The translations under genes were made by a program, and so were the position numbers. Below the pieces are notes generated by a model that worked only from the letters and a program-made list of their open reading frames with translations, ran no database searches and was not told the origin of the DNA. This document shows positions 11,984-56,992 of a stretch of 64,000 nucleotides of DNA, piece by piece. Origin of the DNA: Heteronotia binoei (Eukaryota). Every line of letters begins with the position of its first letter. Position 1 is the first letter of the stretch. Location: positions 124,001 through 188,000 of the forward strand of contig NC_083240.1 of NCBI RefSeq assembly GCF_032191835.1, in the 5' to 3' direction.

Positions 11984-23517
<11,534 letters not shown>

Positions 23518-29200: not shown

Positions 29201-31193
29201 TGCAGACCTTGGGACCTCCACAGCTGGCTGCTGCGCGTGGGTGGCAGCCGTGCCGCTGGACAAGCCCTGTGCATGCTCAGGCCAAGGTCGATTCGCCTGT
29301 CGCTTCCCAGGGCTGCTGGAGAGGCCGGTGCTCCCACCGCCAGCCGTTGCCGCCACTGCCAGCTACAAGGTCTTCGTGTCAGGGAAGAGTGCGGTGGGCA
29401 AGTCTGCTCTGGTGGCCTCCCTGGGGGGTCTGCCGGTCCCCTCAGCCCATCATGAGACAACAGGTGAGGCTTCAGTTCCCCAGCCTGTCCAATGGGAGGG
29501 AGGGTCTCTGGGAGAAGAGACAAGGGAAAACTTCTGGAGGGAGTGCAAAGAGCTTCCTTTGCTGAAGGGCACTGAGAAGGCGGGTGAGTGAAGGGCAGCA
29601 GGAAGGGAGATCCCATGCAGCGCAGAAGAGGCAGCTGGAAGGCACACATGGGCCAAAGAGATTCTTTCCTGAATTCTGGGTCCTCGGAACTGCCGCTATT
29701 GTGTGGGTTTTTAAAAAGTCACGATAGGGCAAATTCCATATTTACTTGGGCTGCGGTATGTAAGCCACTGGATTCACAGAATCCTTCCTCAGACGCTTCT
29801 GCTCAATTAGGCGTTCTGCGAATTTCAGAAAGCATTCCCCTACAGCAGGGGTGGCCAACGGTAGCTCTCAAGATGTTTTTGCCTACAACTCCCATCAGCC
29901 CCAGCCAACATGGCCAATGACTGGGGCTGATGGGAGTTGTAGGCAAAAAAACATCTGGAGAGCTACTGTTGGCTACCCCTGCCCTACAAAGCTGTTTCAC
30001 GTATCCTGTGTCTGGTGTCATTTGGAGCCAGCGGAAGCACTTCTGAAGTGCTGGGAGCCGGACGCCTGTCTTTGTGACGCTTCCTGATATGTGCAGGCCC
30101 TGTGAAGTGGTTCTCTTGCAGGGATCCAGACGACGACCGTGTATTGGGCAGCCAAGCTGTGTGAGAGCAGCAGGCCCCTGTTCTTCAAGTTCACGTTCTG
30201 GGACTGCGGGGAGTCTGTGCTGAAGAAGTTTGATCACATCCTGCCGGTGAGTGCGGGGCAGTTGGCACCAAGAGGGAGGGAGGGAGGGAGGGGACCTTTC
30301 TCATCAGGGATCCTCGTTGCCCTCCAACCACCCCCAGGCCTGCACCCAGAATGTGGATGGCTTCCTCCTCCTCTTCTCCTTCACCGACCGGGCCTCTTTT
30401 GATGACTTGCCGAGCCAGATCTCTCGCGTGACGGATGGAGCTGAGAAGGCTGTCAAAATAGTCATCGGCACCAAATATCCTTTAATACTGGCACGCTCAT
30501 GACACTCTGCTCTGACACTTTTCTTAATGCTTCCCTTGAGAAGGGGAAAGTACTTTTTGCATCCTCAGAGCCACAGGATCACTGTAGAGGTGGATATTTG
30601 CCTATTGAACAGCTGAGACACACCCATTTGCCCGGAGAGGTCCATCTGGAAAGGTGCTGCTCCAGCTTGGTCTTCCTCTGAGGTCCGGGGGGGGGGGGGG
30701 GGCGGGGGCTACTCTACTAGTGATGGGGGGGCATGGTTCATATAGGGAAATGCCCAGCAGTGCTTGGTAGGCAGAGGGTCCCAGGAGCAATGCCAGGTAG
30801 CGTCTCCCAAATGACAAGAAGGTCCCTTCTTTGTGTGTGTGTGTGTGTATGTGTGTATGTCTGGGGCCCCGGAGTGCTGCTGTCAGCCATTCCCAGGAAG
30901 TTGGCAGGGGGTATCTGACCCTCAAAAGAAGGCAGCTTGACATGGCTGGAGGCCCCCTTCCTTAACTCCTCTCCAGGTTTGACCAGTTTGCACACACGGA
31001 CGTCACGGAGCGTGACATAGCTGCCTTCCGCCTCACTTGGGGGCTGCCGGTGCTGCGAGCAAAGAGCACCCGCCCCCCGGACAGCTGCACCGGCCTGTCA
31101 GACGTGGCCCACCTTCTGAACAGGCTTGCTGAGCACCTGTGGCGGCAGGACCAGTGGGCAGCGGGCCTTCTCCCCCCCGCCCCGCAGGCCTAG
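26209..31193 (+). CDS. CPLANE2: Ciliogenesis and planar polarity effector 2 (RSG1 small GTPase), 5 exons, 246 aa
   Basis: Exons 26209-26317, 29311-29463, 30122-30246, 30338-30474, 30977-31193 (741 nt, in frame). P-loop GKSAVGKS, FWDCGES, FSFTDRASFDDLP, VIGTKFDQ match recalled RSG1. Intron 4 is U12-type (AT...AG). Confidence 0.95.
26330..29190. repeat. Modular G-rich minisatellite filling CPLANE2 intron 1
   Basis: Shuffled modules gg(c/g)tgccccccaccgcccc, agagaagggagggaggagggaggga, agcaggagggaggga and gaggcggaggcggcccttgcagg. A 174-bp higher-order unit occurs three times (27721, 27895, 28069). Confidence 0.95.
29846..29981. mobile_element. Palindromic hAT-type MITE in CPLANE2 intron 2
   Basis: TIRs caggggtggccaac / gttggctacccctg; 8-bp TSD ccctacag / ccctacaa. 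Confidence 0.82.
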
Positions 31194-34875: not shown

Positions 34876-35710
34876 TATTTTATGAGCCGCCCTGAGCCTG
34901 CCTTTGGCAGGGGAGGGCGGGATACAAAAATAAATGTATTAGTATTATTATATAAGCAGAGGCAGGAAGCAGATGCGGCAGGGCATCTCCAGGCCACCCC
35001 TTGAGCCTCCTGCAGCTCGTGATTCTTCGGGTCCGATTAGCGTTCCTCCGTTAAAGTCTCTTCCCAAGGGGCGGGCTGCGCAAAGGCAGCCGGGCAGGGG
35101 CCTTCCCGGGTGGGTCGTTCCACCACGCCGGGGCAGCCTGTGTCCGGGGGGGGGCTGCAGGGGGGACCCAGCACCAGCTGGAAAGGCGGCCGGGGCCCCC
35201 ACAGCCAGGGAGGGAAGGCCGCCTGCGCCAGGAGGGAGCGGGCCTTTGCCGGGCGCTCTGCTCCCTCCTCCAGGGGGAGAGCCCAGGACGGGAGGCAGCA
35301 GGGCAGTCCTCGAGCCGGGGCGGCGGGAGTCCGGCCAGGCACCTTCGAGACCCACCAAGTCTTCTTGTCCCGCGGTCGGGCCTTTCCTGCGCAAAGCGCA
35401 GCTCTGGGGCCCCAAAGCCGCCTGCGAGGCGAGCCCCGCCGCCCGCCCCTCCTCCTCGCTGGGCTGGGCTGGGCTGCATCAGGGGGCTCCAAGGGCCGCC
35501 TCGCCCGGGCCGGGGCTGCTGGGGGGGGAGGGAGGGAGGGCGGGAGGGGCCCGGAGCCGCTGCGTCGCTCGCCTCCCATTGCCGGGCCGTGGCCACGACG
35601 CAGAACGCGGCGGGGGCGACGCAGGGCGGGAGGCGGCGTGTGCCTGCAGCGGGGGAAGCAGCCAGCCAGCCAGCCGCCGCCGCCCCCCCCTCGCCGGGGC
35701 TCCCAGCGCC

Positions 35711-38700
35711 ATGAAGGGCCCGGGGCGCGACCCCCGCTGCCTGGCCGCCCTCCCCAACGGCGCGCCCGGCGGCAGCTGCGGCAGCCTCGTAAGTAGGCCG
35801 GCCCCACGGGGAGGGGAGGGGAGGGGAGGGGGCCCCCTTCTCCACCCCCACCGCCCGGCTCCCTCTTGTCCCCTTGGCCCCGGCAGCAGCAGGAGAACGG
35901 CGACCAGCAGCCCCTGTGCACGCCCAGCGGCCCCGAACCCGCCTGCAGCAGCGCCGGCGGCCCCAACCTCTTCCGAGACGGGCGGACCAAGATCGGTGGG
36001 TGCCGGAGGCGAGGGGAGGCGAGGGGAGGGGAGGGGAGGGGGGTCCCCCGCCGCCCTGACCAGCCGTGCCGCTGCAGACTTCGTGCTGGTGTGGGAGGAG
36101 AAGGCGCGTCCCGGCGCCGCCGCCGCCGCCAAGAGGAGCCGTAGCAGCAGCAGCAGCCGCCGGCGGAGGGCCCGCGCCCAGGCCCGGGCCGAGCAGCAGG
36201 AGGCAGCCGTGGCCTCGCGCCACCAGCGCTGGCGGAGCAAGTTCGGGCGCAACCTGCGCGCCACCGGCCTCCTCCTCGAGCAGGTCTGTCCGCCGGGCCC
36301 GGGGGCGGGGCGGGGGTGGGGGCGCCCCCTGATGGCTGCCCCCCCTGACCGTGCCGCCCCCCCACCCACCCCCCCCCCCCCGCCGGGCAGGAGGAGACGG
36401 CGAGCGAGCGGCGGAGCGTCCAGTTCCTGAAGCTGAGCGCGCCCTGGCCCCTGCTGCTCTACTACGCCGAGGAGCTGAGCCTGCGGGCGCCGCTGCAGGT
36501 GAGCCTGGCGCCCGAGGGGAGGGGAGGGGAGGGGAGGGGAGGGGAGGGGGCAGCAGCCGTAGCCGCGTCTCCCTCCCTCCCTCCCTCCTGGCCCCCCGCA
36601 GGCCCACCCCAACCCGGACAGCAACGCCTCGGACGCTCTGCTCCGCAAGCTGCGCCTGCCCAACCCCCTGGCCCAGCCGGTGCCCAACAAGCCCCTCGAC
36701 TTCTACACCTGCGCCTTCCGCAAGTCCAAGCTCCACAGGCGAGTAGCGGCAACGCCGCCGGCCCCAGCCTGCCTGGCTCCTTTGGCATTCCAAGCGGCCG
36801 CCAGGCCCCTCTCCCCGGTGGAGCCCTTCCGCAGGGCAGCCCTTTCTCCTCGCCCGCCCGCCCGCCCGCCTCCCTGGGCGGCCCCTGCGGGCGTGGGGGA
36901 GGCGGGGGTCTGGGCACAGGCTGGCTCTGGCGAAGGAAGGCGCCCACTCGGATGCTTCCGCCTCTTTCAGGTTTCTGGGCAGCGACTCCCGCGACTCCTA
37001 CTTCAGCAACACGCAAAGGCAGCGCATCGTGAGTTGCCCTCGTTCGCGGAGGACGGGCGCTTCGTTGAGCCAGGCTGAGGCAGCCTCCTCCTTCCCCGGC
37101 GCCCAGCCCGAGGGGGCGGGCAGTCTCCCCTCCCCGGGGCCGCGCCTCAGCCTGGCTCTCCTGCTGCCGGCAGGTGTACGAGATCTTGGCCCGCACTGCC
37201 TACGGGAAGAGGAAGCGCGCCCAAGTGGGCATCGAGCGGCTGCTGAATGAAGGCGTCTATTCTGCAGCCTTCCCCTTGCACGAGGTGAGGGCAGGCCCGG
37301 TGCTGCTGTCCAGGGGCTGAGAGTCTGGCCCAGAAGGGACGGCAAATACAGGAGGCAGCAAAGGCCGAACGAGGCGCCTGGCCACGGGGCGCTTGGGCCC
37401 TGCCCCTGCCGCTGCCTCCTCCTCCTGGAAGGGACCTCTGCGGCCATCTAGTCCACCCCTGCTCCTCCTGCTGCAGGGTCCTTTTGAGCTGCCCGAGTAC
37501 GAGGTGCCCGGAGAAGAGCTGAACCCCCGGCAGGTCCTGTACGGCTTCTGGGCGCGATGGGGCTGCTGGTACAAGTACCAGCCTTTAGACCACATCCGGG
37601 AGTATTTTGGAGAGAAGGTGGCCATCTACTTCGCCTGGCTGGGTGAGAAGCCGCTGGATCGGCCGCTTCCTTCCCCCTGCTGGAGCCCCCTCCGCTCTTC
37701 CTCAGGCCCAGCCGCAGCCCCCACATAGCAGAGGGCCCTGGAAGCCCGCAGCCACGCTGGCTCCCCCTTCCGCCCCAGGCCCTTGTGGGGGCAGGAAGCT
37801 CTCTGCGCATCCTCAGAGGAGGCTCCTCTCTGCCTGTCTGCCTGCCTTGTGTGGAAGGGAGGGGGATCTAAGCCCCCCCCCCGTGTCCTCTGTGATGGAC
37901 TTCCGGCCCCCACAGGTATTTCCTGGCTCCACACTGAGCAGATTGCAGGGCCCAGCCCCTGTTGGCCGGAGGGGGGCAGAGGGGTGTGCCTGAAGTAGGC
38001 CCTCCTTGTCTTGCAGGCTTCTACACCGCGTGGCTCCTCCCTGCTGCAGGCGTGGGCACCTTCGTCTTCCTCGCGGGCCTCTTGGCCATGGGCACCAACA
38101 CGCCAGCGTGAGTGTGGGGAGGGGCTGCCGGGCAGCCTTGTTGGGAGGGGGGGCAGCGGGTGCCTCCTTGCTTGGCCATCTAGAAGAGCTTCGTCCTGAG
38201 AGCGGAATGGACCCTCCAGGCTCAGAGGCAGTCTGTCCCCCGCCACGAATGGCTGGAGGCTGCTTTGCATGTGGCCCCCCCACTAGCCCTGGATCCCAAG
38301 GGTGAGGTGAAGCCCCAGGAAAGGGCCGAGGAAATTTCAGAGATGGGTGGGGATGTGCCCCCCCCCAAAGCAGCTGCTTCTGCATTCCCCCCCACCCCCA
38401 GGCAAGAGATCTGCAACAGTGGGGGTCAGTTCCTCATGTGCCCGCTGTGTGACTCCTGCGGCAACTGGAACCTCTCCGAGATCTGCTCCATGGCCAAGGT
38501 GGGTGTGGCACGCTGGCTTGCAGCGGGGTCTGCGCGGGGCCAGGGGGAGGGCTGCAAGGTGAGGGCAGGCGGCTTTGCAAGGCCACCCACAGGGGCTGGG
38601 AGGCTTGTGGGGCTCCTGGGGGCTCTTCCTTCTTCCTGTGCCTTCTGCCCCCTCCCCCCCAGGTCGGCTACCTCTTTGACCACCCGGGGACCGTCTTCTT

Positions 38701-41700
38701 CAGCATCTTCATGTCCTTCTGGGCTGTGACCTTCCTGGAGTACTGGAAGCGGAAGAACGCCACCCTGGCCCACCACTGGGACTGCATGGACTTCCAGGAG
38801 GAGGAGGCAGGCGGGGGCTGGGGGGAGGGGGCAGAGGCCTGGGGCTGGGGAACTGTCAGGAGCCAGTCTGGAGCCCGCTTGGCGGTGTGCCCGTTCTGAG
38901 GCTGGTGGAGCTGGGGTGTGATGGGGGGGCAGGAGCGGGAAGACCTCTGGGTGGCCGCGAACCCCAATGAGGCACAAGTGTCACTTCCGTGCCTCACCTG
39001 CAGAGGGAACCTTAGAAAGGCCCTCTGCCCACTGAAGCCAAGCGATTGCCAGGAGCCCTTTAGGCTGCTGAGGTGTTTCCTGCCTTTTAGCAGCCAGTGA
39101 GTGGGTGGAGCAGCCCTGTGCAGCAGCAGGGCCCTTGTTCTCCACCCCCCAGCCCCAGCGTGGGGCAGATCCCTTCTCCGGCTTCCAGTCCTTACTGGGC
39201 TCTTGGCCTCGCAGGAACGGCCGCGGCCGGAGTTTGCTGCACTGGCGCCTTGCATGGAGCAGAATCCCATCACTGGGGTGAAGGAGCCCCACTTCCCCGC
39301 CTGGGACCGCCTCCCACGCTTCCTCACAGGGTCCATGGCCATCATCCTCATGGTGAGAAGCAGGGCCCCTCCGCCCCCCCTGGGATGCTCGGGGTCTGTC
39401 TGCGCAGACTGGGGAAGGGGCCGCCTGGCACAAAGGTGGCTTCATTCATGTGCCCTGGGGGGGTCTCTCTGTCCCCGCTCAGCTCTGCGTGGTGATGATC
39501 TTCCTGGTGTCCGTGATCCTCTACCGCGGGATCATCAGCACCATGATGTACCGCACCGGAAACTCCCTCTTGGTGAGCCAGGTAAGAGGAGACGGGGAGG
39601 AGGGGGGAGCACGTGGGTTCTTCTGCCCAGCTGCTGCTGCTGCTGCACAGGGGCATCCATTGAGGGGTTGCCAGCCTCTTCTCCCGGACATTTCACCTCT
39701 TGTAGGCAGAGCCCAGTCAAGGGAAAGGAGGAGGCAGGATCCCACTCTTGGGCCCGCCTCCCAGCAGCAGCAGGAGCAGGATTGGGCCCTCCTGCCTGGG
39801 CGTCTCTTTCTTTTGTTGTCCTGCAGGCCACTGGGGTGCTGGGGGAGGGGGGTACCCTGCAGTGGCCCCCGTCCTCCAGAGCTGGGAGAAATCCGGCCTC
39901 GGGCAGAGGTCTCCCCAGGGCCCTGCAGCTCCTCGAAGACTGACCCCTCTGCCGCCCTTGCTCCTCCCAGCAAGTGGGGAGGGAGGCCTGCAACAGCCTC
40001 TGCTGAGGCTGGCCTGCTCCAGAGGATAACCCTCCTCTTGATGCCACTTGGGATTCTCCTTGAGGGACCGAGCCCTCCAGCTGAGGCTGGCCTGCTCCAT
40101 AGGATAACCTGGCAACCTGAGGATGGTGCTGAGTTGGATGGGGATGGCCTTTGAAGCTGTGGCAGGCAGAGCCCCCTCCTCCGTGCCCCTCTGGTGGTTT
40201 TAGCAGCTCCCAGTTTCTCTCTGAGTTCCTTTGCTCTTTGTGGCTTAGCCCCCGCCTTCTCCCCATAAGTGGCTGGAGGAGTCCGGGGGCCTCTGCTCGT
40301 CTGTCTGTGCACTGTGCGGGGGAGGGAGGAGGGCTGCTGCCCAGCGGGGAGGGGGCGCCTTTTCTGGGGCAAGCAGGCAGGCTGGCTGCTCAGGGTGCTG
40401 CCAAAAGGAAAAGGGTTCCTAGACGTGGAGGAGGCTCCGTTGCTGCTCCCCTTCTTCCCCCAGGACTTTGAGGAGCGGTCCTGCCTAAGAGCCCTGTGGC
40501 GCAGAGTGGTAAGGCTGCAGTACTGCAGTTGGAGCCCTCTGCTCACGACCTGAGTTTGATTCCAGCGGAAGCTGGTTCAGGTAGCCTGCTCCAGGTTGAC
40601 TCAGCCTTGCCTCCTTCTGAGGTCGGTCAAATGAGTCCCTAGCTTGCTGGGGGGGAAGTGTAATGACTGGGGAAGAGAATGGCAAGGATGGCGGAAGTGG
40701 GGAGGCAGGCAGGGGGCCCCATGGCAGTGGATCCCCCAGGTCCAGCGATTGTCTCCAAGGCTGCAAGAATGCCCCCCCAGGGCTCCTTCCTGTCACAGCC
40801 CGCCCCCGCCTGCAGTGATGGGAACGGAGGGGGGAAGGGCTCCAGAGGGCCAGCCCTGGGGTGGGGGGGAGGAAAAGAGCCCGGAGGTCCCCAGCAGGCA
40901 GCCAGAGCCTTTGGAGAAGTGTCTGGGCAGTGGAGCCGCCACCTCGGAGGCCCCTCCTGGCCTCCCTTCCTTCTGCCTCCTTGCAGGCCGGGAACATCGC
41001 CAACCTGAGCAGCTGCATGGTGAACCTCGTCCTCATCCTCCTCCTGGGCCAGGTCTACACCTCCCTGGCCGAGAAGCTCACCAGGTGGGGTGAGTAGGAG
41101 CCAGCTCTGCTGCAGCACCCCTCCCCCCTTATTCCCTGGGGCCCTTCCTAGCACCACCGCTCAAGCGCCCTTTGCGCCGGGGGCGGGCAGGGCCAAACCC
41201 AACCTTTCTGCCACTTCCTGATTGCAGGAGGGGCCCCTCCCTGGCCTTCCTGCCTGACCCTTTTTGCTGGGGCCACCACTCCTTTGCACACTTCCCTAGA
41301 TGCCGCCAGACCCAGCCACGTTGGGCATCGGTGTCCTGAAGGGGCATGGGGGGGGCCCTCCTCCTCCCCACTGCCACACGCACACCCACATCCTATGTCG
41401 CCTCTGCAGAAATGCACCAGACACAGACGCAACATGAGGACGCCTTCACCTTCAAGGTCTTCATTTTCCAGTTTGTGAATTTCTACTCCTCACCTTTCTA
41501 TGTGGCCTTCTTCAAAGGCAGGTGCGCAACACACGCCCCCCCCCCCATGGTGCCAAGCAGACAGCCCCGCCAGAGGGAGGGAGGGAGGGAAGGGGGGTGC
41601 ACAGCCTGGCCCCTTCTTAGCTGAACAGGAAAGTCATGCCCACTGCCTGGGTCTGGCTGGAGTGTTTCAAGCCCCTCCCCCAATGAAACAGGGCTTTTGT

Positions 41701-44700
41701 CTCTCCTGGCCAGGTTTCCCTCCCCCCCCCCAGCTCCCCTTCAGGCCGGCCTGGGACTCAGGAGCTGCCCTTGGGGTCTGGGGCAGTCCCCTACAAGGCT
41801 GCTCTCCTCCTCCTCTCCCCCCCCCCTCGGGATGGGACCCCCAAGTGCGGCATGGCAGGCAGGAGGCTTTGGGGGCTGCCTGCAGAGGAGGGGCTTCTGT
41901 GGGGTCAAAGGGCTCTCTCCCCCCCAACAGGTTTGTGCGCTATCCAGGTCAATATGGCAAACTGCTGGGCATGCGGAATGAGGATGTAAGTGGGCCCTGC
42001 CATCCTCCCCAGGGGTGAGCTGGGGACTTGTCTTGCGAGAGGCTGGACTGGAAGCGCTGTCTGTCCTTCTGTTGCCTCTTGCCCAATCAGGTGTGCAGAA
42101 GCACCGGAGGTGGGCGTGCCAGAGGGATCCCGGGTTGGTTGGCAGGGGTCCCTCAGCCTGGTCCCAGCTTGGCTGCCCCCCGGGCCTCCAGCCAGCAGCA
42201 GTGAAAGCCTCCCCTCCCCCCCCACAGTGTGGCCCCGGGGGGTGCCTGATCGAGCTGGCCCAGCAGCTCTTTGTCATCATGGTGGGGAAGCAGATTGTCA
42301 GCAACGCCCAGGAGTTCCTCCTCCCGTGAGTTTCTGCCCCTGCAGGCAGGTGGGAGGGGGGCTGGGTGGCAGGAGCTCCTGCCGTGGGGAGGAGGCCCAG
42401 GAGCGTGGCGTGCCAGCTGTCCTCCCCCCTGCCACTGCAGCAAGCTGAAGGCCTGGCACCAGAAGCGGAAGCTGGCCCGGGTGCGGGGCGCCCAGATCGC
42501 CCAGGAGCCCAGGCGCTGGGAAGAGGACTTTGAGCTCATCGCCTGCGAAGGCCTCTTTGAGGAGTACCTGGAGATGGGTAAGAGGCAGCCGTGGGGAGGG
42601 GGGTGTCCCTGTGGCCACCCACTGCGGGAGTCTCTGTCTTTCTGGGCCAGGCAGGCGCTGGCTCTTGACCTCTGGCCACCACTTCATCATGGGGGACCAG
42701 AGGACAGGCCTCCTGTGCAAGATTGTTGTGCGGCTCCCAGCCGAGCTCTGCCGTTGTCCCGCAGTCCTGCAGTTCGGCTTCATCACCATCTTTGTGGCCG
42801 CGTTCCCCCTGGCTCCGCTCTTTGCCCTGCTGAACAACTGGGTGGAGATCCGGCTGGATGCCCAGAAGTTTGTGTGCGAATATCGCCGCCCAGTGGCCGA
42901 GCGCGCGCAGGGCATCAGCGTCTGGTTTTTCATTCTGGATGTCCTGGCACACCTCTCGGTGGTTGTCAACGTGAGTAGGGAGGCAGGCAGCTTCTCCCAA
43001 GGAGCCGCTGTTCTCCCGAGCTGGCCTCAAGGGGGGTAGGGCCCTCCTGTACGATGGGTGGGAGAGCGCTTTTCCTGGCATGCAGACACACCCACGGAGA
43101 GAGCTGCACCTGTTGCATTTTGTCACCTGGAGACAAGATACCTCTGGGACTGGTTGCTATGGAAACCGGAAGGGGGGTTGCAGCTCACATGCCTCAATCC
43201 AGAGGAGGCAGCGTTGCCGGAGCCCCAGGAGCTGGGCCCCCTCCCTCTCCCCATCTGCCTGTCCAGGAGAAGAGCCGCCCTCCCCGGTGTGGGGGGCCTG
43301 GGCTTTCTAAGCAGCAGCCCTGCAGCCCCCCTCCCACTCTGGGGAGACCTGCCCTAACCCTAACCCAGCAGCTTGGGAGGGGGGGTGCGGCTCAGGGGGC
43401 CTTCTGAGCATCCCTCTCTGTGTGTGTGTGTGGCCCACAGGCCTTCCTCATCGCTTTCACCTCCGACTTCCTGCCACGCCTCCTCTACCAGTACGAGCAG
43501 GACAGCCAGCTGCGGGGCTACGTCAACTTCACCCTGGCCTACTCGCCTCCCAGCTATGTGGACAGCAACCACACCATGTGCCGGTGCGCAGGCCACCGCC
43601 TTGCCCTGCCCCCAGCCTCCCCCCTCCCCGGGCAGAGGCTCCCTGCTCACCTGCCTGCTTGACCCCCCCATGCAGGTACAAGGCTTTCCGCGATGCCAAC
43701 GGCAGCTACACCCTCTTCTACTGGAAGCTCTTGGCCATCCGCCTGGGCTTCATCATCACCTTTGAGGTGAGAGCCGCTGCTGGCTGCCTGCCTGGGGCTT
43801 CCCCCCCTCACCTCTCCAGCAGAAGGGGCAGTCACATCTCTGCTGGTCTCCAGCCCCGGAGGGAAGCTGCTTCTTTCCCTTTGATGCCCCCCCCCAGATC
43901 CCCCCTCCAGGGACTGCTCCCCCCCAGACATGGGCGCCCCCTGCTGGGCTGAGGAAGCAGTGCACCCTTCTCTGACTCACAGGGTGGGGGTGGGGGGGCT
44001 GCCAGGTATGCCAAAGACACTGCTCACCGTTCCAGGGCCTGCACAATCACTCATGCCTGGCACACCACACAATCACAGCACACGACATTGTGGCCACCTG
44101 CGGCTATTTTAGTGGGGGGAGGCCTGAAGCATGCTGGGGGGGGGGCAGAAGTGTTGCAGTGAACTTTGGCACCCCCCCTCCCAGGTGCTGAGTGAGCGGT
44201 GGGGCGTTGGGAGGGGCCCTCAGGGACTGGTGGCCCCCCACTTCATGGCCTGGGGGCTTCTCCTCTGGGTTGAGTTCTGCTCTGCAAAGGGCTCAGTGGC
44301 CAGTCTTTGGAGGAGTCTGTCTCCCTCCCTCCCTCCCGGCCTGTGCCCAGACCCACCACGCTGTGTCGTCTTCTATGGAGTCTGTCTCCCTCCCTCCCTC
44401 CGGGCATGTGCCTCCCTCCCTCCCTCCTGTGCCCAGACCCACTGTGCTGGGTCTCCCTCCCGCTGCCTTCCATGGAGTCTGTCTCCCTCCCTCCTGGCCT
44501 GTGCCCAGGCCTACCGTGCTGGGACTCCCTCCCGCTGCCTTCTGTGGAGTCTGTCTCCCTCCCTCCCTCCTGGCATGTGCCCAGACTCACCGTGCTGGGT
44601 CTCCCTCCCGCCGCCTTCCGTGGAGTCTGTCTTCCTCCTGGCCTGTGCCCAGACCCACCACGCTGCCTCTCCCTCCCGCCTCCTTCCGTGGTGTGGCCCA

Positions 44701-45462
44701 CCCAGCCGCCACCTCTCTGGCGGGCAGCAGCCATCCTGGGGCAGGGGTGCTGAGGAGGTGAGCCCCCCCTCCGTGGGCTGCCTTCTCCCCTCGCCCTTGC
44801 AGGGCAGGCAGGGGTCAGCTTGCTGTTGGGCTCAGCCAAGACTGCCTTAAGGGAGCGAATGGTCACATTGGCCTGCCTCCCTGGGCTGTGGGGAGGCTTG
44901 CTGGGAGGGAGGGAGTTCTTTGCATGATGCTGTGAGCCAAGGCAAAAGGCACGGGGTGGGGGTGGGGGGTGCAGAGAGGTGTGCAGCTGCTGAGGTGGCC
45001 TCCCCTTCCCTGGCAGCACGTGGTGTTTTTCTGCTTGCGCCTGATTGACTGGCTGGTGCCGGACGTCCCGAAGTCCCTGGAGCTGAAGATCAGGCGGGAG
45101 AGATACTTGGCCAAGCAGGCCTTGGCCGACAACCCGGCTGCGCTGCTGATGGTGAGTCCGGACTCCTCCTCCTCCTCCTCCCCAGGTCAGTTGGGGTGGG
45201 GGAGGGGATGGGAGGGGCGCCTGGGCCATTGTGTTGATGTTGTCCCCCCCACCCCAGGCACCAAAAACGTCCCTTGCCAAAACCCACTCTTGCCCTCAAA
45301 GGATCAACTCCTGCCCCCTGGGGTATGCAGAGAAGAGGAGCTGCCTCTGAGCAGGTACAGAGTGCACTTCCTGCCCCACAGGCTCTCTCTGTCCCACCTC
45401 CAATGAGAGATTCTGGACTTTGCCTATTCAATTGTTTAGCAGCAGCTTCTGCTAAGATTTAG
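35711..45462 (+). CDS. ANO7L1: Anoctamin-7-like (TMEM16 family) protein at the syntenic position of human ANO7L1; about 900 aa
   Basis: Exons in one open frame: 35711-35788, 35887-35995, 36078-36283, 36391-36498, 36602-36738, 36971-37028, 37174-37284, 37477-37642, 38017-38107, 38402-38498, 38663-38806, 39215-39352, 39483-39581, 40987-41089, 41410-41521, 41931-41985, 42228-42325, 42441-42577, 42765-42970, 43441-43583, 43676-43766, 45017-45151 (874 codons). Probable last exon 45382-45462 (ALSVPPP...SAKI*), less certain. Motifs [56 protein letters not shown]. Family assignment is firm; the symbol rests on synteny. Confidence 0.9.
40488..40665 (+). mobile_element. Third tRNA-derived SINE type in anoctamin intron 13
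   Basis: gagccctgtggcgcagagtgg (A box), gagtttgattcc (B box) and a gttgactcagccttgcctccttctgaggtcggtcaaatgagt central block typical of reptile SINE bodies. Confidence 0.6.
44311..44690. repeat. Degenerate ~65-75-bp minisatellite in anoctamin intron 21
   Basis: About five units of ggagtctgtctccctccctccctcc.ggc.tgtgcccagac. Confidence 0.8.
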
Positions 45463-45780
45463 CTATTCAAGGCTGCTGGACAATACAAAAAAGTTAAGGG
45501 TCTTTTGAATTATCACTAGCAAGCCAAACCAAAAAGTTTCAGAGACTTTTATCTTGTCTTGAAAAAAGACATTGTTCTCTTTATTGTGCAAAACAGGGCC
45601 CTGTGAAAATTAACCATATATTTACTGTATGGACAAGTGCTAAAATTAACAAAGTTCCTGTAATCATATTACAGCAAGTAATAATTTAAAAAGGAAAGCA
45701 AGTCCCAGGCTTCTGGCTCAACAAGCTCAAGTCAGACATATCCCCCAAAATCTCACCCCATGTCCTTTCTGAGACTTCAT

Positions 45781-46770
45781 AAGAACATAAAAGAAGCCAG
45801 GTGTATTGGGCCAATGGCCCATCCAGTCCAACACTCTGTGCCACACAGATGTCAAAACCCAGGTGCCATCAGGAGGCCCACCCGTGGGGCCAGAACCACA
45901 GGAGCCCTCCCATTGTGGCCCTGCAAGCACCAAGAATAGGGAGCATCTCTGCCCCAGACACACTGTTTCCTCTATGGCCAACAGCCACTCATGGACCTCT
46001 TCTCTATAGATGTATCCAGTCCTCTCTTGAAATGGCATATGCTTATAGCTGCCACCACTTCCTGTGGCAATGAATTCCATGTGTTTATCACCCTTTGCGT
46101 GAAGGACTTCCATTTATCTGTTCTAAGCCTACTGCTCAATTCCATTGAGTGCCCACCACTTCTTGCATTATGAGAAAGGGAGAAAAGGACTTCTTTCTCT
46201 ACCTTCTCCATCCCATGCATAATCTTGTTAACCTCTATCATGTCACTCCTCAGTTGACTTTCTCCAAGCTAAAGAGCCCCAAGCGTTTTAACCTTTCTTC
46301 ACAGGTAAAGTGTTCCATCTCCTTAATCATTCTAGTTGCCTTTTTCTGCACCTTTCCCAATGCTAGAATACCTTTTTTGAGGTGCAGTGACCAGAACTGT
46401 ACACAGACAGTGTTCCCAATGAGGCTGCCCCATAGATTTCTACAGGGGCCTCATTACTGTGGCTGGCTGGTTTTCAGCCCCCTCCCTAATAATTCCCAGC
46501 AGTGCATTTCCCTTTTCTTTTGTTTAAATTGCACTCACACCCTGCGTTGACACCTTCCTTCAGGGAGTTATGTGCCTTGACTCCCAAGATCTCTCTCCTG
46601 GTCAGTCTCCACCAGCTCAGGCCACGTCAAAGGACATGTATAGTTCGGGTTTTCAGCTCCAACGTGCATTCCTTTGAACCTCATCTGCCACATTGACGCC
46701 CACTTGCCCAGCCTACACAGATCCCTCTGGAGCACCTCACAAGCCTCCCTCATTCTCACCACCCTGAATA
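45781..46770 (-). mobile_element. CR1 LINE 3' fragment
   Basis: Minus-strand frames LQRDLCRLGKWASMWQMRF and FTQRVINTWNSLPQEVVAA; aagaacata terminus. Confidence 0.8.
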
Positions 46771-48420
46771 ACTTATGGTGCAATCCAGAGCCATGCCCAC
46801 GCCCCGGCTGGTTTGCAAGCTTTTCTGCCCCTCACCTGCGTAGCTCCTTAGCAACGGGCACCCGGTGGTGAGTGGAGGCAGGGGCACTGTGACAGACTGC
46901 TGCCAGAACCAATGAGGGGCCATGTGGCATGGGGGCGGAGTCCAGTGTCCATCTCTGGCGGGGGGGGGAGCAGAGGGGGGCAGGCCATAGGGGCTGCAGG
47001 AGTTGCACTCCTTTCCAGAAGCACCTCCCCCAAACACCCACACCCACTTGCTTCAAGGGGCCAGCTCCTGCCCTAGGCACCTGAGCGTGGGGTGGGGTTT
47101 GAGCAGGAGAGGGGCCCCTCCTTGAGGGAGCAGAGGTGGGTGGGCATGGCTGCCATTTCACTCTGGGTACTGGGGTCATGCCTGTTTCAGAGCAGTTAGT
47201 GCCCAGAGACTGCCAGTCCAAATCTCTTCTGCATTCCCCATGACTTCCATCTGTGGGGATGTAGTTGTGCAGCATTGCAATGGAAATCAAGTCACCAGTA
47301 GTATGTCTGGTGGGGGAAGATATCACTGAAGAGCGGGGCCATGGAGTCAGGGGCAACCCCCCAAGCCCCACCCCTCCAAAAACATGGTGTCTGCCTGCTG
47401 CATTGGCTCTCCCCTGCCTGGCACTGACTCCATGGCCCCACCCCTTCAGTGATATCTTCCCCCGGGGACAGAAGCCCACCCCCTTCCTGGAGCAGACAGA
47501 CAGTCATGAATCTGATTCCTGCACTTCATTTATTGGTGACCTTCTCCCCACCCCTGCACTGCCTGACATCATAGAGTTGGAAGGGGCCTCCAGGGTCACC
47601 TAGTCCAGCTCCCTGCACAATGTGAGGAACTCACAAATTCTTCCCTCCCCTCCCCCAGGGAGAGCCTCAGCCCCTCTCCTCTGCTTCATGCTCCCAACCA
47701 CCCTGTGAGGTCAGTGAGGCTGAGGGGGGGGGCGCTCTCTCTGGTCAGCTTCCTCCCGTGGGGTCTCCCACCCCCCTCTGGCCACCAGCTGTAGGAGGGA
47801 GGGAGGGCAACCAAACAGACAGGGACACAGTTGTGACACAACCCAGACTCCCTTGAACTGCAAGCCATGGTGGGGCACGGCTGCTCCTTTCTCTTCCGCC
47901 CTGGGACCACCACCAAGACTCCCTGTAAGCTGTGGAGTCTTGTGAGCAAAAATTCTGCTTTGTGAGCTACTGGCAGGAAAGTGGTGACCTCCTGCATCAA
48001 ATAGTTTCCTCTGGGGCCACTTCTCCTGAGCTACGACAAAAATGTGTGAGCTGGAGGCTAAAAAAGCCTGAGCTAGCTCACGCCAACTCAGCTTAGAGGG
48101 AAGAGTGAGCCCAGCCCCCTCCATGGCATGCCCTGACGCCTGCTGAGCGCACTCCACCTGCATCTCCCACCACCAGGGCCTCACCGCCTGTTCTCAGCCC
48201 GCCTGGCAGGCAGCTCCAACACAGAGCCCTGGGTCACTCACTCCAACCACAGAGCTGGAAGATTTCCTGGCTGAAGTTTATGTGTGCTGGGGAGGGGCTT
48301 GGTTGCCCCAAGGAGGGAGGTGATTGGCTGCAGTCAGTTCCTCTGAGTGAGGGGGTGTGCAGAGAGACTTGGAGTTCAGGCTCAGTAGGTGTTTATGGCT
48401 GGTGTAACTCAGGCGGAAAG

Positions 48421-48658
48421 AAAAAGAAGAGGAGGAGATTGGATTTATATCCTGCCCATCACTCAGAGGGGCTTGCAGTCTCCTTCCCTTTCTCTCCCCA
48501 GAACAGACACCCTGGGAGGCAGGTGGGGCTGAGAGAGCTCGGAGAGAACCGGGACTGCCCCAAGGTTACACCAGCAGCTGCATGTGGAGGAGGAGGGAAT
48601 CAAACCTGGTTCTCCCAGATTAGAGTTTGTACTCTTAACCATTAGAACAAACTGGCTC
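48421..48658 (-). mobile_element. Squam3-like SINE (diverged, shorter variant)
   Basis: Purine tail, ggatttatatcctgccc, cagacaccctg...gtggggctgagagagctc, gggaatcaaacctggttctcccagat. Confidence 0.75.
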
Positions 48659-49179
48659 AGGGGGCCAACTAACTCTAGCCATGCCCCCCAAACACCCCAC
48701 AGCCATGCTGGCACAGGGGCCAATGCCTCACTTGCACCATTGGGAGGGTGGGGGGCTGCCCCCCCCCCAGTCTCCAGCTGCCAGTGCCCACGAGTGACAG
48801 AGTAGCGCTGGGGCCCTGTGCCCTCGTCACCGGCCCTTATGCAGGCAGGCATATCTTGGGCAGTGGGCTATCCAGAGGGCAGTGGGCTCCCGAGTGCTTT
48901 CAGCCCCCCCCCCAGATTGCTGTGCCCACGTCATCTGCAAACTGAGCCACTTTACTGCTTACCCCCAACATCGAATCATTAAAGAACATGTTAAAAAGCC
49001 CCTGAGCATCCCTGAGCCCTGCAGCCCGCCCCCCACTGCTGACCACCCTCCGCTGGGAAAACTAACCCTTTCCCCTGCCTCTCTGTTTCCTGTCCATCAA
49101 CCAGTTGTTAACTTGTCCTCTCACATCTTGACTGCTGAGGGTACCAAGGAGCCTTCAGTGAGGAACTTGATCAAAAGCT

Positions 49180-49995
49180 GTCTAGAAATCTAGGTAAAGA
49201 CTGTGTCTTGGATCCCCCTTGGCCACGTGCTTGTTCACCCCCTCAACCAGGTCAGTGAGAGAAGATCTTTCTTTGCAGAACCCCTGATGAGTCTTCCTCA
49301 ATAGCTTTGGTTCATCAATGGGCCTACTAATTCTATCTTTAATAACGAATTCCACCACTTTACCCCAAATTGGCTTGAGACTGACTGTCCTGTAGTTTCT
49401 CTGCTCTCCACTGGAACCTTTTTTAAAGATGGGGGTTAAATTCGCTGTCTTCCAGTCCTTTGGGGTGGAGGCGAGATGTTGTGATAGTTTTGTCAGGAGA
49501 TCCACACGTTCACCTGTGAGTTGATGATGATGGTGATGAGGATATATCCCGCCCTCCACTCCAAATCTCAGAGTGGCTCACAATCTCCTTTATCTTCCTC
49601 CCCCACAACAGACACCCTGTGAAGTGGCTGGGGCTGAGAGAGCTCAAGGACAACCTCTGCTGAGCCAAAGCCATTGTAGCAGGTGCAAGTGGAGGAGTGG
49701 GGAATCAACCCCGGTTCTCCCAGATAAGAGTCCGTGCACTTAACTACTACATCCAACTGGCTCTTTCAGAACTCTTGGAGGTGTGCTATCTGGGCCTGGT
49801 GATTGGTCAGTTTTTAATTTGCCCATCAGTCATAGCCCCCCCTCTCTCATCACTTCAATCTGACTCAGGTCTTTTAATGCCCCTTCTGAAATCCCTGCTT
49901 CTGGAGTGGGCAAGCACCCCCCCTCCTCCACAGTGAAGAAGGAGGCAAAAAAGGCATTCAGCTTCTCTGCCATTTCCCTACCCTCCTTCTTTATA
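49180..49995 (-). mobile_element. CR1 LINE RT fragment, interrupted by a SINE
   Basis: DWKTANLTPIFKKGS...NYRTVSLKPIWGKVVE and AEKLNAFFASFFT; frameshifted. Confidence 0.75.
49525..49762 (-). mobile_element. Squam3-like SINE interrupting a CR1 fragment
   Basis: (gat)n tail, atatcccgccctccactcc, then head ending taactactacatccaactggctct. Confidence 0.75.
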
Positions 49996-51261
49996 GAATC
50001 ATAGAACTTGTCCAACCCCCTGCACAACACAGGAAACTCCTAAAGCACCTCTCCCCGAGTTCCCAGTGCCTGGGCTAAACGGCCACCCCTTTGGGCTTGT
50101 GCAGTTGCCTTCACCCAGCACATCTTTCAATACCCACCCCTTTTAAGCCCTGGGTTTTGGGGGGGATGTGGTGTGTGGTGCAGTGTTGTGGTGCTGTGGG
50201 TCCAGCATTGTGTGACTTGTGCAGTGCTCCCTTCTTTGTGCAGCAGCATGAATCAGGGAGGGGGGCTGCTGGATCTTGCTGTTCTGGGTGGGGACTGAGC
50301 CTTGGGCCTGCCATGAGGGGAGTGGCCTGGCATGGTGCAGCAGGGGCTGCCAGGCGGGATGGGGGATGGGCGATGCCCATGAGTGAGCCAGGCGGGGGCC
50401 TCCTGCAGAGCCTTTCTTCATGCAGCCCCTTCTCGCAGCCTGGGCTGGCCTCGTGGCGCCAGTTAGTGGGTTGGTGAGGCAGGGGTGCCCTTTGGGTTGC
50501 TGGACCATCTCAGGGCTGTGCTTCCTTCCTTCCTCCCCTCCCACCACAGCAAGCCACCTGACCTAGCAGCACTGGGGTGCCCCCCCCCCAGCACGCGAAG
50601 AGAAGACGCTGCCGGAGGATGGAGGATGGCGCTGCGGAGGCCTTTTGGGGCCCTACCCTGTGCTGCTTCCTGGCTGTCCTGCCACTTGGGGATGGGGGGC
50701 CTCTCCTGAAGGAGGGGGTCTCTCTGGCTCCTGAGGCCACTGGGTCTGGGCTCCCCCTCCCCCGCTTTGTGCTCTGCTTTTGCCCAAGGCCAGCCTTTCA
50801 GTCCTGTCACTGAGCTGCCCCAGGTTTCTTCCATCTCAGCTGTGAGGCAGGGCCAGAAGTCGGAGGGGCTGCATGTTGCGCGGGGGGGGGATTCCTGCAT
50901 GTCCTGGTTCCTGTGGTCAGAGCACCCCTGGCTTCTCCCCTCCCCGAGAGAGAACTGCTTTCTGCTGCAGCCACAGTTGCCGCCACCCCCACCCCTCCTG
51001 TCGCATGTCATGGGAGTCCCGGAGGTGGGGACGCGGGAGCAGCAAAACAGTGAAGCCATTCTTAAATAAATGAATAAATAAATACATAAAGGTTGTGTGT
51101 GTGTGAGTAAAGTGAAGCAGCAGTGCCGTCCACCGCCAGCAGCAGAAGAGGGGAAGGAGGTGGGGGGGGGCACAGAAACCTCCAGAGCACAGCTGGGAGT
51201 TTCCTCCCCCTTCTGCTGGGGGGGCGGGCTTAGAAGCAGGGCGCTCTGGCAACAGGGGAGA

Positions 51262-51730
51262 AGGAGGAGGAGAAGAAGAAGATACTGGATTTGGATCCCA
51301 CCCTGTGCTCCGAATCTCAGAGTGGCTCACGATCTCCTTTCCCTTCCCCCCCACCCCAACAGACGCCCTGTGCAGTGAGTGGGGCTGAGAGAGCTTTTAC
51401 AGCAGCTCCCTTCCTAGGACAACCTCTGCCAGAGCTATGGCTGGCCCAAGACCACTCCAGCAGCTGCAAGTGGAAGAGGGGGTAATCAAACCTGGTTCTC
51501 CCAGATAAGAGTCCGCTCACTTAACCACTATGGCTGACCCAAGGCCATTCCACCAGCTGCAAGTGAAGGAGTGGGGAATCAAACCCGGGTCTCCCAGATA
51601 AGAGTCCGCTCACTTCACCACTATGGCTGTCCCAAGGCCATTCCATCAGCTGCAAGTGGAGGAGGGGGTAATCAAATCCGGTTCTCCCAGATAAGAGTCC
51701 CAGCACTTAACCCCTACACCCAATTGGCTC
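51262..51730 (-). mobile_element. Squam3-like SINE with a triplicated 93-bp head
   Basis: Head units start at 51435, 51528 and 51621, with the same junction (ccacta|tggctg) as the 6148 array. Confidence 0.8.
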
Positions 51731-52614
51731 TTGAGATACAGAGGGGTAGGTCAGGCCGCGGGCGGGCGGGCGAGGGGTGCAGGCGGTTGGGCTGAAGGTG
51801 GGCCGGGAGGGAGGGAGGGAAGAGGGTCCCGCCTGCGCGGAGTCCCCCCCCCCGCCCCCCACCTAGGGGGGCTGGATGGAGCCAAGGGGCGCCACTAGAG
51901 GCCGCTGCGGAGAGAAGGCGGCCCCTGCCTGCAGGGCCCAAGAGGGCCAGCGCGTTTTGGCTCCCCCCCGGCCCAGCCCCATCCCCAGCAGAGTCTTCAG
52001 GGAGGGAAGCAAGCGGCTGCCAGCAGCCAGCGAAGACAGGCGGGCGGAACCGGATCCGCTTCCCGTTCACTAGAAGGCGCTACTGCCCTTGCAAGCCGCC
52101 CGCCGGGACCGGACTCTGCCCTCCTCCCCCCCCCCCCCGCGGCAAGGCTGACGGCAGAAGCGCAGCAGCGACGGGGCGCCCGGGCCAGGCGAGGGAGGGG
52201 GGAGGAGAGCCGGCCTGCCCGGCAGCTCCGGCCCTCGGGACGTGCTCAGAGGCGCAGCTGTGGCTTGGGGCGAGGCGGCTTCTCCCGGGTGGGGGGGGGA
52301 GGCGGCGGCGGCAGGGAGGGCTGGAACGCGCGGTCCACCTGCAGCCCCCCTGTGACGACCCACCGACTCCTCGTGGAAGGAGGTGAACGGGAGGGGGGTG
52401 GCCATTGCTTGCCTCTGGACGGTAGCCCTGGAGTTCCTCGGTGGTCTCCCCTCCAAATACTGAGCGGGCAGACCGTGCTGAGCCTCCCCCCACCCCGGAC
52501 AGGGCAGCCAGTTGCCCCTCCCTCGACTCTTTCCGTTTTGGCTGCTACAGCCTTTTCCCTGGCTGCTCTCCCATTCACAGGCACTAGGGGGCAGTGGAGC
52601 CCTGTATCTGTATG

Positions 52615-52800
52615 GAAGGGAGGGAAGAACGGAGGAAAGGGAGGAGGGAGGAAAGAAGGAAGGGAGAGAGGGGAAGGGAGGGAGGGAAAGGGAAGGGAGG
52701 GATGAACGGAAGAAGGGAAGGACGGAGGAAAGAAGGGAGGGAGAGAGGAAGGGGACGGGAGGGAGGGAGGAAAGAAGGAAGTGAGGGAGGAAGGAAGGAG
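52615..52800. repeat. (GGAA/GGGA)n purine tract running into an assembly gap (N 52801-53038)
   Basis: Direct inspection. Confidence 0.85.
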
Positions 52801-54649
52801 NNNNNNNNNNNNNNNNNNNNNNNNNNNNNNNNNNNNNNNNNNNNNNNNNNNNNNNNNNNNNNNNNNNNNNNNNNNNNNNNNNNNNNNNNNNNNNNNNNNN
52901 NNNNNNNNNNNNNNNNNNNNNNNNNNNNNNNNNNNNNNNNNNNNNNNNNNNNNNNNNNNNNNNNNNNNNNNNNNNNNNNNNNNNNNNNNNNNNNNNNNNN
53001 NNNNNNNNNNNNNNNNNNAGGTCCCTCCCTCCCCTCTGCCCAGCTCGGAGGGGAGCTCCCTCCTCCGCTCCCCCCCTCCAGGCGGCGCCCCCTTCTTCTC
53101 GGAGCGGGATCTGGCCGGGGCGGTACTGTTGGAAGCAGGACTGGCCCTGTTTCCTTGGGAGAGGCGCCTGCTAGGCCGGCACCGGCCACGCAGGAGGGGG
53201 TCCCCCAGGGCTGCAGCCTGCAGCAGAAAGCTGGGCCCATGAGCCCCCCCCCCCCCGCCCCTCCTGAAGGCTGCAGGCAGACTGCTGTCCCGCAGGACTC
53301 CTGGGCTGCCGGGAGCGAAGGGAGCCAGGCATAGCGGGGTGAGCCAGAGAGGGAAGGCAGCCGGGGCTCCCCCCCACGCCGCCCTCGGCCTCTTCTGCTT
53401 GGGGAGGGCTCGGCCGGCCCTGGGGTGCTGCGGGGGGGAGGAGGTCCCTGGGCAGGGAAGCCGCCCGCTCCACTTGGCCCCGCTGCCACCAGCGGGCAGC
53501 AGGGGGCGCCCGCCCACCCCTCTCCCCTCGCGCCAGCCAGCTCAGCAAGTCGCCCGAGGTTCCGCCGGCCCCCCCTCCGGCCGCCCATTCAGGCCCCAAA
53601 GCCCCCGCGCGCCTTTGCCCCCAGCCTCCCTCTCCCGCCCCGCGGAGGCTCCGGCCGCTCAGCTGCAGGGGGGAGGGGGGACGCAGCGGCGCCCGGCCCA
53701 CAGCCCTCCCCCCGCCGGGCATAGGAGGGGGTGAAGAGGCGGTGGCCTCCATCCACGCCCGGCCGCGGAATGTGGCCGCATTCCTTCCTTGGCCGCCTGG
53801 CGGGCGGGCGGGCAGCAGGCGGGGCTTGGCTCTCTCCCGGCCGGCCCTCTCCTACTCCAGCCCCGCCCGCCTTCCCTGCAGCGCAAAGCGGCCTTCCGCG
53901 CTGCTGCTGGCGGGTCTAGCTCCGTCGCCTCGCCCGCCCGCCCGCCGGGCCTGGGAGGGGACCCGCCAAGGGAGAAACCCCCACCCCACCCCTCCTCGGC
54001 TTGGCTTCCGCGGGACTGGCCGGGAGGAGGCCGCCTCTCTCGCCCTTCGGTCGCAAGAAACAGCCTTCTAACCTCCCCACCCAGTTGCCCCCTGCCCCCC
54101 CTCCCGCTGGAGAAGCGCTGCCGGGAGCACTCAGCCCCTGCACCCCGGGCACCTTCTGACGACCTCGCCGCCCTGGCCGGCCTGTCTTTCTTTCCCCCGG
54201 GCGCAGCAAGGCGGCTCCCGCCCCGGCCTTTCCTTCCAGCGGGAGAGCGCCAGCGGAGGGCAGGGCCATGGGGGGGGGCTCAAGGGGATCCCCTCCCATA
54301 TTTCGTGAAGGCGGCCAGGCGGAGTGGCAGCACTTGAGCCCCCCTCACCCCTCTCCCACGCGCGCGCGCAGCGAGGAGCCTGTCGGTTGGGGCTCAGACG
54401 TACTTGTGGGCTTCGCGATCCGAGACCGCCCGCCCGGCTCCCGGGTGGTTCAGTCAGCCCTTCCTAGATGTCCGCGGCCAGATCCCTGCTCAGAGCCAGG
54501 AGAAGGGAAGGCGGGTCCCGCTCGGCTGGCCCCACCCGGTGGCCAAGTGGCTGAAGGGGCCCAGGGAAGGGAGAGCAAGAATTTGTCCCGGGGGGACCTC
54601 GAAGTCTCCCCCCCTCCCAGGACCCCCCCCCCCACACACACACAGACAA

Positions 54650-56934: not shown

Positions 56935-56935
56935 G

Positions 56936-56966
<31 letters not shown>

Positions 56967-56992
56967 TCCTTCCTTCCTTCCTTCCTTCCTTC
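56935..56992. repeat. Compound (CTGC)n(CTTC)n microsatellite
   Basis: Direct inspection. Confidence 0.8.

Follow-up and report, generated by a model that had tools for sequence, protein, structure and literature searches.

The vertebrate anoctamins, or TMEM16 proteins, are counted as ten (Milenkovic 2010, PMC2974728; review PMC8835819), a count that is based on human and mouse. One of them, ANO7 (TMEM16G), scrambles lipids in TMEM16F-null cells, and reports differ on whether it gives non-selective currents (PMC8835819). Here, we describe an anoctamin gene in a 64,000-nucleotide stretch of the genome of the gecko Heteronotia binoei (NC_083240.1, positions 124,001 to 188,000; hereafter the window, whose own numbering we use throughout). 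A first reading of the sequence, which we call the original prediction, had proposed that this gene is a little-characterized ANO7 paralog that is retained in reptiles and decayed in humans, where its counterpart would be the pseudogene ANO7L1. Our best explanation as a whole, to which we give a probability of roughly 85%, is that the gene is an intact and transcribed member of a second clade of vertebrate ANO7-type proteins (clade B, canonical ANO7 being clade A), that it is the gene of the presumed ANO7L1 locus, and that its product has a calcium-gated function of the kind predicted for its family.

Several described genes lie close to this one. ANO7 (clade A; human 2q37) has the same TMEM16 architecture, with Anoct_dimer and Anoctamin domains and identical acidic residues at the Ca2+ site, and is 56–58% identical to the clade-B gene within a species; it forms the sister clade, both clades being related to invertebrate ANO7-type genes, and differs in its location. 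ANO1 (TMEM16A) and ANO6 (TMEM16F), the nearest proteins of solved structure, have the fold and the Ca2+ site in common with the window protein and are 34–36% identical to it over ~830 alignment columns, but belong to other subfamilies. Another name for an eleventh TMEM16 protein, ANO11 (TMEM16L), likewise denotes a different subfamily, which is reported to have been lost in vertebrates (bioRxiv 10.1101/2022.04.22.489151), whereas the window gene is of ANO7 type. Human ANO7L1, formerly ANO7P1, carries a pseudogene annotation; at what we presume to be the same locus, the gene of the gecko is intact. In the literature searched, ANO7L1 is known only from human expression and expression quantitative trait locus (eQTL) lists, the former recording its transcription in human tissues, and we found no paper on ANO7L1 evolution or on a second vertebrate ANO7.

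Results

An intact anoctamin gene between CPLANE2 and EPHA2

The exons of the gene were located by listing open reading frames (ORFs) and by a tblastn search with a full-length homolog over 35.7–45.4 kb of the + strand. The homolog, a whale-shark protein (P0015), was found when the exon encoding transmembrane helices (TM) 7 and 8 was searched against a representative protein library, and the exon model was made by spliced alignment to it; junctions were refined by scoring every frame-compatible donor–acceptor pair against P0015, and the 5′ end was read by eye. The resulting gene occupies 35711–45406 (+) and has 22 coding exons that together comprise 2877 nt and encode 958 amino acids (aa). Its frame opens with an ATG at 35711 and closes with a stop codon at 45404–45406, and it contains no internal stops or frameshifts. 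Twenty of the introns are GT-AG and two are GC-AG (donors after 36738 and 38806). These data confirm that the feature is a real, intact multi-exon TMEM16 gene, and colinearity with other genomes and matches to the Protein Data Bank (PDB) confirm the gene order FBXO42-CPLANE2-anoctamin-EPHA2. The original prediction had given the extent as 35711–45462 and the product as about 900 aa; the start stands, while the end and length are replaced by those given here.

The gene belongs to a second clade of ANO7-type proteins

Searches for homologs that started from P0015 and from armadillo ANO7 (P0086) returned two differently named sets of proteins. We built two maximum-likelihood trees, one by a quick search on 61 rows and one by a careful search on 40 rows, the latter with support values from ultrafast bootstrap and the Shimodaira-Hasegawa-like approximate likelihood-ratio test (SH-aLRT); both were rooted on invertebrate ANO7-type proteins. 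The vertebrate ANO7-type proteins split into clades A and B, supported at 100/100 and 100/99, respectively. Human and mouse ANO7 fall in clade A together with proteins of a monotreme, birds, alligator, turtles, tuatara, lizards, three geckos, a caecilian, gar, and a shark. The window gene is not grouped with human and mouse ANO7 but lies in the sister clade, among the geckos (100/100). The other members of clade B come from other squamates, turtles, a crocodile, amphibians, lungfish, coelacanth, ray-finned fishes, sharks, chimaera, lamprey, hagfish, marsupials, and two placentals (Sorex and Tupaia), and the order of lineages broadly follows the species tree, with the cyclostome sequences falling on the clade-B side. 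Paroedura, Eublepharis, Podarcis, turtles, and gar are represented in both clades. Three teleost proteins are closest to the clade-A gar protein, so teleosts also carry both genes. The two clades separated no later than the origin of jawed vertebrates.

The H. binoei genome also contains a canonical ANO7, at G000:C6:89313611-89353043, with exons 71–95% identical to those of Paroedura ANO7, so the window gene is not the only ANO7-type gene of its genome. It is therefore a paralog of ANO7, as had been proposed. The outcome named in advance as refuting this, grouping with canonical ANO7 in a genome that has no second ANO7, was seen in neither of its two parts. A whole-assembly Pfam scan of the 2.63-Gb assembly found 11 anoctamin loci; four of these lie on contig C21 (117.0, 123.4, 126.7, and 164.4 Mb) and two on C8 (40.7 and 74.9 Mb).

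Over the full alignment, the window protein is 88.6% identical to its counterpart in Gekko kuhli, 87.0% to that in Paroedura picta, and 86.8% to that in Eublepharis macularius. The NCBI “anoctamin-7-like” models of these geckos (P0195, P0205, and P0175, respectively), of Chrysemys (P0173), and of Macrotis (P0237) are orthologs of the window gene; the gecko models are 87–89% identical to the window protein and are alike in having FBXO42 and CPLANE2 as neighbors in the same orientation. The window protein differs from the models by small N-terminal indels and by a C-terminal tail that is 70 residues longer after a poly-Ser run. Taken together, it is very probable that the window gene is the gecko ortholog, intact, of an ancient second ANO7-type anoctamin. 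Database names diverge from this orthology: the name “anoctamin-7” is attached to clade-B proteins of sharks, teleosts, Anolis, Pogona, Sorex, and Tupaia, and “anoctamin-7-like” to some clade-A proteins (Python, Heptranchias, and one Eublepharis model).

The gene is under purifying selection

Codon comparison by the method of Nei and Gojobori showed that the gene is constrained. Against Paroedura, the number of nonsynonymous substitutions per site (dN) was 0.11 and that of synonymous substitutions (dS) 0.45 over 895 aligned codons, giving a dN/dS of 0.25, which fell to 0.17 for residues 151–870; against Sorex, dN/dS was 0.18. Constraint is relaxed at the N-terminus (0.76) and in the tail (0.45). 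Within the same species pairs, clade B evolves more slowly than ANO7, as judged by protein identity: gecko and mammal proteins are 74% identical in clade B and 60% identical in clade A, with corresponding values of 71% and 63% for gecko and gar and of 69% and 65% for gecko and shark. At nine alignment positions, the two clades are fixed for different residues.

The gene is transcribed and spliced

We compared positions 35650–41600 with one public RNA run (X1), which is stored as contigs and labeled metatranscriptomic. Allowing for 1–4 ambiguous bases, the contigs reproduce nine junctions of the model exactly: 36738/36971 (GC-AG), 37028/37174, 37284/37477, 38107/38402, 38498/38663, 38806/39215 (GC-AG), 39352/39483, 39581/40987, and 41089/41410. 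These are the junctions of exons 5/6, 6/7, and 7/8 and of exons 9/10 through 14/15, and they include both GC-AG introns. The listed contig pieces have 0–3 mismatches each to the window, so the RNA came from H. binoei or a very close species. The gene is thus transcribed and spliced as modeled at nine junctions, a result that speaks to neither level nor tissue. The silence and neutral dN/dS that had been named in advance as evidence against a functional gene were not seen, as RNA is spliced and dN/dS is 0.17–0.25.

Within intron 13, summed contig depth at 40426–40823 is ~137,000, compared with ~2–6 on the exons. Loose contig ends there contain a tRNA-like B-box (GGTTCGATCCC-type), and the segment is probably a tRNA-derived short interspersed element (SINE) that is present in many transcripts.

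Exon structure and gene ends

At the 5′ end, the gene has three small exons (35711–35788, 35887–35995, and 36078–36283), separated by introns of 98 and 82 nt. Exon 1 comprises 26 codons from the ATG, ends at a GTAAGT donor, and has zero coverage in run X1; its start codon and N-terminal sequence line up with those annotated in three gecko orthologs. The conserved motif FRDGxTKIDFVLVW is interrupted by the 82-nt intron at 35996–36077, whose removal alone restores it and thereby supports exon 2, and exon 3 (DFVLVWEEK...LLLEQ) is supported by tblastn to P0015 and P0005 and by a weak Pfam Anoct_dimer match. A single long first exon (a 485-aa ORF at 34973–36430) was rejected: FRDGRTKI and DFVLVW fall in different frames there and are restored by the two small introns, and the ORF is a chance open frame in GC-rich DNA. 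Introns 1, 2, and 4 (82–103 nt) carry G-rich pentanucleotide runs at 35808–35831, 36005–36041, and 36514–36549 of the form (GGGGA)n, (GGAGG)n, or (GAGGG)n. Translated, these runs mimic a repeated GGEGRGG peptide and so helped to create spurious long ORFs.

Exons 4 (36391–36498) and 5 (36602–36738) were placed by spliced alignment. Exon 5 is followed by the first GC-AG intron (donor GCGAGT), at which an RNA contig joins 36735/36968, equivalent to 36738/36971 given 4 ambiguous bases. The RNA junctions described above delimit exon 6 (36971–37028), whose intron runs GT..AG, and exon 7 (37174–37284), which also matches Anoct_dimer (3e-12). Exon 8 (37477–37642) begins at an RNA junction and contains the end of the dimerization domain and the start of the Anoctamin domain, with Pfam matches to PF16178 and PF04547. 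Exon 9 (38017–38107) encodes TM1 and was placed by spliced alignment and by the RNA junction at its end. RNA junctions bound exon 10 (38402–38498), encoding a Cys-rich extracellular loop, and exon 11 (38663–38806), which matches Pfam Anoctamin (3e-17) and precedes the second GC-AG intron (donor GCAGGC; a contig joins 38804/39213, equivalent to 38806/39215 given 3 ambiguous bases). They likewise bound exons 12 (39215–39352), 13 (39483–39581), and 14 (40987–41089) and the start of exon 15 (41410–41521; Pfam 8e-13). Spliced alignment places exon 16 (41931–41985, GT-AG introns), exons 17 (42228–42325, TM6) and 18 (42441–42577, TM7), each of which also carries a Ca2+-site motif, and exons 20 (43441–43583) and 21 (43676–43766). 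Exon 19 (42765–42970, TM7–TM8) gives the best Pfam Anoctamin match (1.5e-31) and aligns to mouse TMEM16A. The last exon, 22 (45017–45406), was placed by spliced alignment, and its 3′ end is predicted.

Near the 3′ end, we rejected a splice at ATG|GTGAGT (45149), since ortholog proteins read through it as MVSPDSS. A second site, CCAG|GTCAGT (~45185), is a possible donor of a small intron, and the frame is the same either way. The last intron contains a tandem repeat at 44412–44691 (76-nt unit, 3.9 copies, 83% match), which on translation yields repeated SLPPSLP... ORFs on both strands.

Calcium site, domains, and fold

In TMEM16A, the Ca2+ site is formed by N650, N651, and E654 on TM6, E702 and E705 on TM7, and N730, E734, and D738 on TM8. 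The window protein carries the corresponding S-N..E, E..E, and N..E..D residues within SNAQE (residues 629–633; 42300–42314), EEYLE (677–681; 42559–42573), and NNWVEIRLD (706–714; 42833–42859), of which the TM8 N, E, and D align with N730, E734, and D738 of mouse TMEM16A. Both clades keep the acidic residues without exception, and the three motifs that the original prediction had singled out (SNAQE, EEYLE, and EIRLD) are thus present with these residues intact. The first TM6 position is Asn in clade A, lamprey, and teleosts.

PF04547 (Anoctamin) is matched in profile order (1–16, 41–85, 85–128, 192–227, and 334–401; best E 1.5e-31), and PF16178 (Anoct_dimer) is matched by exons 3, 7, and 8 (6.5e-4, 3e-12, and 6e-8). 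For an AlphaFold2 model of the 89%-identical Gekko ortholog, all 50 listed best PDB matches were TMEM16A, F, K, nhTMEM16, or afTMEM16, led by TMEM16A and TMEM16F, with E down to 1e-33 and TM-scores of 0.4–0.5. Neither the sequence search nor the fold search found an ANO7-type structure among its PDB matches.

The 958-aa protein thus has an N-terminal dimerization domain and a ten-helix membrane domain with a complete Ca2+ site, and is predicted to form a homodimer. Each subunit would bind two Ca2+ between TM6 (N and E), TM7 (two E), and TM8 (N, E, and D). Binding may open a membrane-exposed groove that, as described for ANO7, scrambles phospholipids and/or passes a non-selective current. We consider it somewhat more likely than not that clade-B proteins are Ca2+-gated scramblases or channels.

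Distribution among vertebrates and the human ANO7L1 locus

The gene's retention in reptiles, as originally proposed, stands, but its restriction to them does not, since clade B extends from cyclostomes to marsupials and includes Sorex and Tupaia. Occurrence in placentals and birds was judged from the best 120 matches to the Sorex protein, with placental proteins of at least 470 aa considered. The only mammals among these matches were Sorex, Tupaia, and four marsupials. Full-length clade-B proteins are thus almost absent among placental matches, which fits wide placental loss, the human pseudogene included. No bird was found among the best 120 matches to clade-B queries, though a crocodile appears; in birds the gene may have been lost, or may be hidden in poorly assembled GC-rich DNA.

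Human ANO7L1 presumably lies at 1p36.13 between CPLANE2 and ARHGEF19/EPHA2. We regard orthology of the window gene and ANO7L1 as very likely, though presumed.

Neighboring genes and repeats

A Paroedura locus (L031) is colinear with the window at 21.9–23.6, 26.2–31.2, and 36.2–45.2 kb, which correspond to FBXO42, a Ras-like gene, and the anoctamin. The Ras-like gene is CPLANE2 (RSG1; 26194–31178, +), with exons at approximately 26194–26307, 29283–29468, 30099–30490, and 30936–31178 by tblastx colinearity; its P-loop exon has a single PDB match, 7q3e_D “Ciliogenesis and planar polarity effector 2” (E 8e-20). Further upstream, 21900–23590 (+) contains the last exons of FBXO42, colinear with the F-box/Kelch gene of L031. 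In Sorex araneus (L032), CPLANE2 is followed directly by the clade-B gene in the same orientation, so that CPLANE2 directly precedes a clade-B gene at three loci: the window, L031, and L032. The CPLANE2 intron at 26307–29283 is ~3 kb here compared with ~350 bp in Paroedura. The extra DNA is 67–74% GC, with a GC skew of 0.21–0.29 and an AT skew of 0.36–0.62 (a strand bias toward G and A), and its growth looks like a purine-rich simple-repeat expansion.

Downstream, the ligand-binding exon of EPHA2 lies at G000:C18:189407-189874, 1.4 kb past the window end, and its best PDB matches are all EPHA2 (E 1.6e-84, compared with 9e-58 for the next receptor). Within the window, 59243–59310 (+, end approximate) is a probable EPHA2 exon 1 encoding a putative signal peptide, an open frame (MGRAGRLLLLLLVAGLLGG...) that was read by eye. 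No match to RhoGEF (PF00621) was found between the anoctamin and EPHA2, so ARHGEF19 was not detected there. The interval 45463–59242 contains GC-rich low-complexity DNA and a gap of Ns at 52801–53018. It also contains CR1-type long interspersed element (LINE) tails at 54841–55389 (+) and 46002–46450 (−); the first of these is a conserved block common to Paroedura, which was considered as a gene and rejected as a LINE tail.

Discussion

If the window gene is the gecko ortholog of a second ANO7-type anoctamin, how secure is that identity? It might simply be canonical ANO7, with “ANO7-like” a naming artefact, as NCBI calls many clade-B proteins “anoctamin-7” and the window protein is ~58% identical to ANO7. 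This can be given practically no weight, since the two clades are reciprocally monophyletic, geckos, turtles, lizards, gar, and sharks occur in both, and the genome has a separate ANO7 on C6; the tree and this second locus already refute it. A decaying or silent copy, as in humans, with a frame left open by recent luck, would be compatible with the two non-canonical GC donors, with a C-terminal tail that diverges after a (CTC)n microsatellite, and with a dN/dS of 0.76 in the first 150 residues, all of which count against an intact gene. However, the 958-codon frame is unbroken through 22 exons, the RNA shows precise splicing of both GC-AG introns, dN/dS of the core is 0.17, all Ca2+-site and most family-invariant residues are kept, and a variable N-terminus and tail are common to all anoctamins compared; we therefore find decay highly improbable. 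It is also conceivable that human ANO7L1 is a later copy of ANO7 rather than an ortholog, in which case the gecko gene would still be a true old paralog, but “decayed in humans” would not hold. The placement of ANO7L1 beside CPLANE2 and ARHGEF19 at 1p36.13 is itself presumed, which weakens the claim of orthology. Against a later copy, a placental, Sorex, has its clade-B gene directly downstream of CPLANE2, and no placental besides Sorex and Tupaia is found among the best 120 matches, as expected under decay in place. ANO7L1 and ARHGEF19 are moreover listed side by side as targets in one eQTL study. A later copy thus seems improbable, though less so than decay of the gecko gene.

What the protein does is a separate question. 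A functional gene might instead encode an ANO1/ANO2-like Ca2+-activated chloride channel, or an intracellular scramblase or regulator, for instance of the endoplasmic reticulum (ER), without plasma-membrane current. The closest solved structures by sequence are ANO1 (E 1e-23 with the TM7–8 exon) and then ANO6 (E 7e-18), reports of ANO7 localization and current conflict (PMC8835819), and nine differences are fixed between the clades, along with a change from NN to SN on TM6. The tree nevertheless places the gene in the ANO7 lineage rather than with ANO1 and ANO2, and lipid scrambling in TMEM16F-null cells has been described for ANO7 itself (PMC8835819). Sequence does not confidently separate a channel from a scramblase. 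Such a different action is unlikely but deserves to be taken seriously.

Other points also weigh against an intact gene with a Ca2+-gated product. The first TM6 Asn (N650 of TMEM16A) is Ser here and in most clade-B tetrapods and sharks. The AlphaFold2 model is weak (predicted local distance difference test [pLDDT] 61, predicted TM-score [pTM] 0.51) and silent on the groove and pore. No functional assay of any clade-B protein was found in the literature searched, and the suggested function draws solely on the family and the paralog. The RNA comes as contigs from one low-depth run labeled metatranscriptomic, with a depth of ~2–6 on exons, and exons 1–4, exons 16–22, and the exon 8/9 junction rest on prediction. 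Finally, the frame of the window gene runs on for ~70 codons beyond its poly-Ser run, (CTC)6 at 45163–45181, and this stretch has no counterpart in other geckos; other gecko and lizard orthologs end ~10 residues past the poly-Ser run. The region (45163–45406) may reflect a tail particular to the lineage, a frameshift at the microsatellite, or an error in the assembly. With these points weighed, the original interpretation of an intact ANO7 paralog is supported overall.

The gene is already in databases, as NCBI annotates it in dozens of genomes under “anoctamin-7-like” or, inconsistently, “anoctamin-7”; “little-characterized” therefore holds for the literature searched but not for annotation. 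For annotation, the practical yield is an exon model, now corrected, in which the 5′ introns are tiny and two introns are GC-AG. The label “ano7” calls for caution in annotations of fish, sharks, and some lizards, where it often does not denote the ortholog of human ANO7.

We see an even chance that vertebrates ancestrally had 11 anoctamins, the eleventh being a sister of ANO7 beside CPLANE2 that is older than the jawed-vertebrate split and more conserved than ANO7. If so, this gene was kept in fishes, amphibians, non-avian reptiles, and marsupials and is unannotated in nearly all placentals, including human and mouse, and many fish and shark “ano7” entries would be clade-B orthologs. Placentals would then have given up its physiological role, and its absence from both model mammals would be why TMEM16 research has overlooked it. 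For work on ANO7-type proteins, of which PDB searches gave no solved structure, the more conserved clade B is possibly an easier target. A well-conserved eleventh anoctamin, expressed and constrained, would then be present in most vertebrates, and its loss in placentals would offer a natural case for asking what ANO7-type proteins do.

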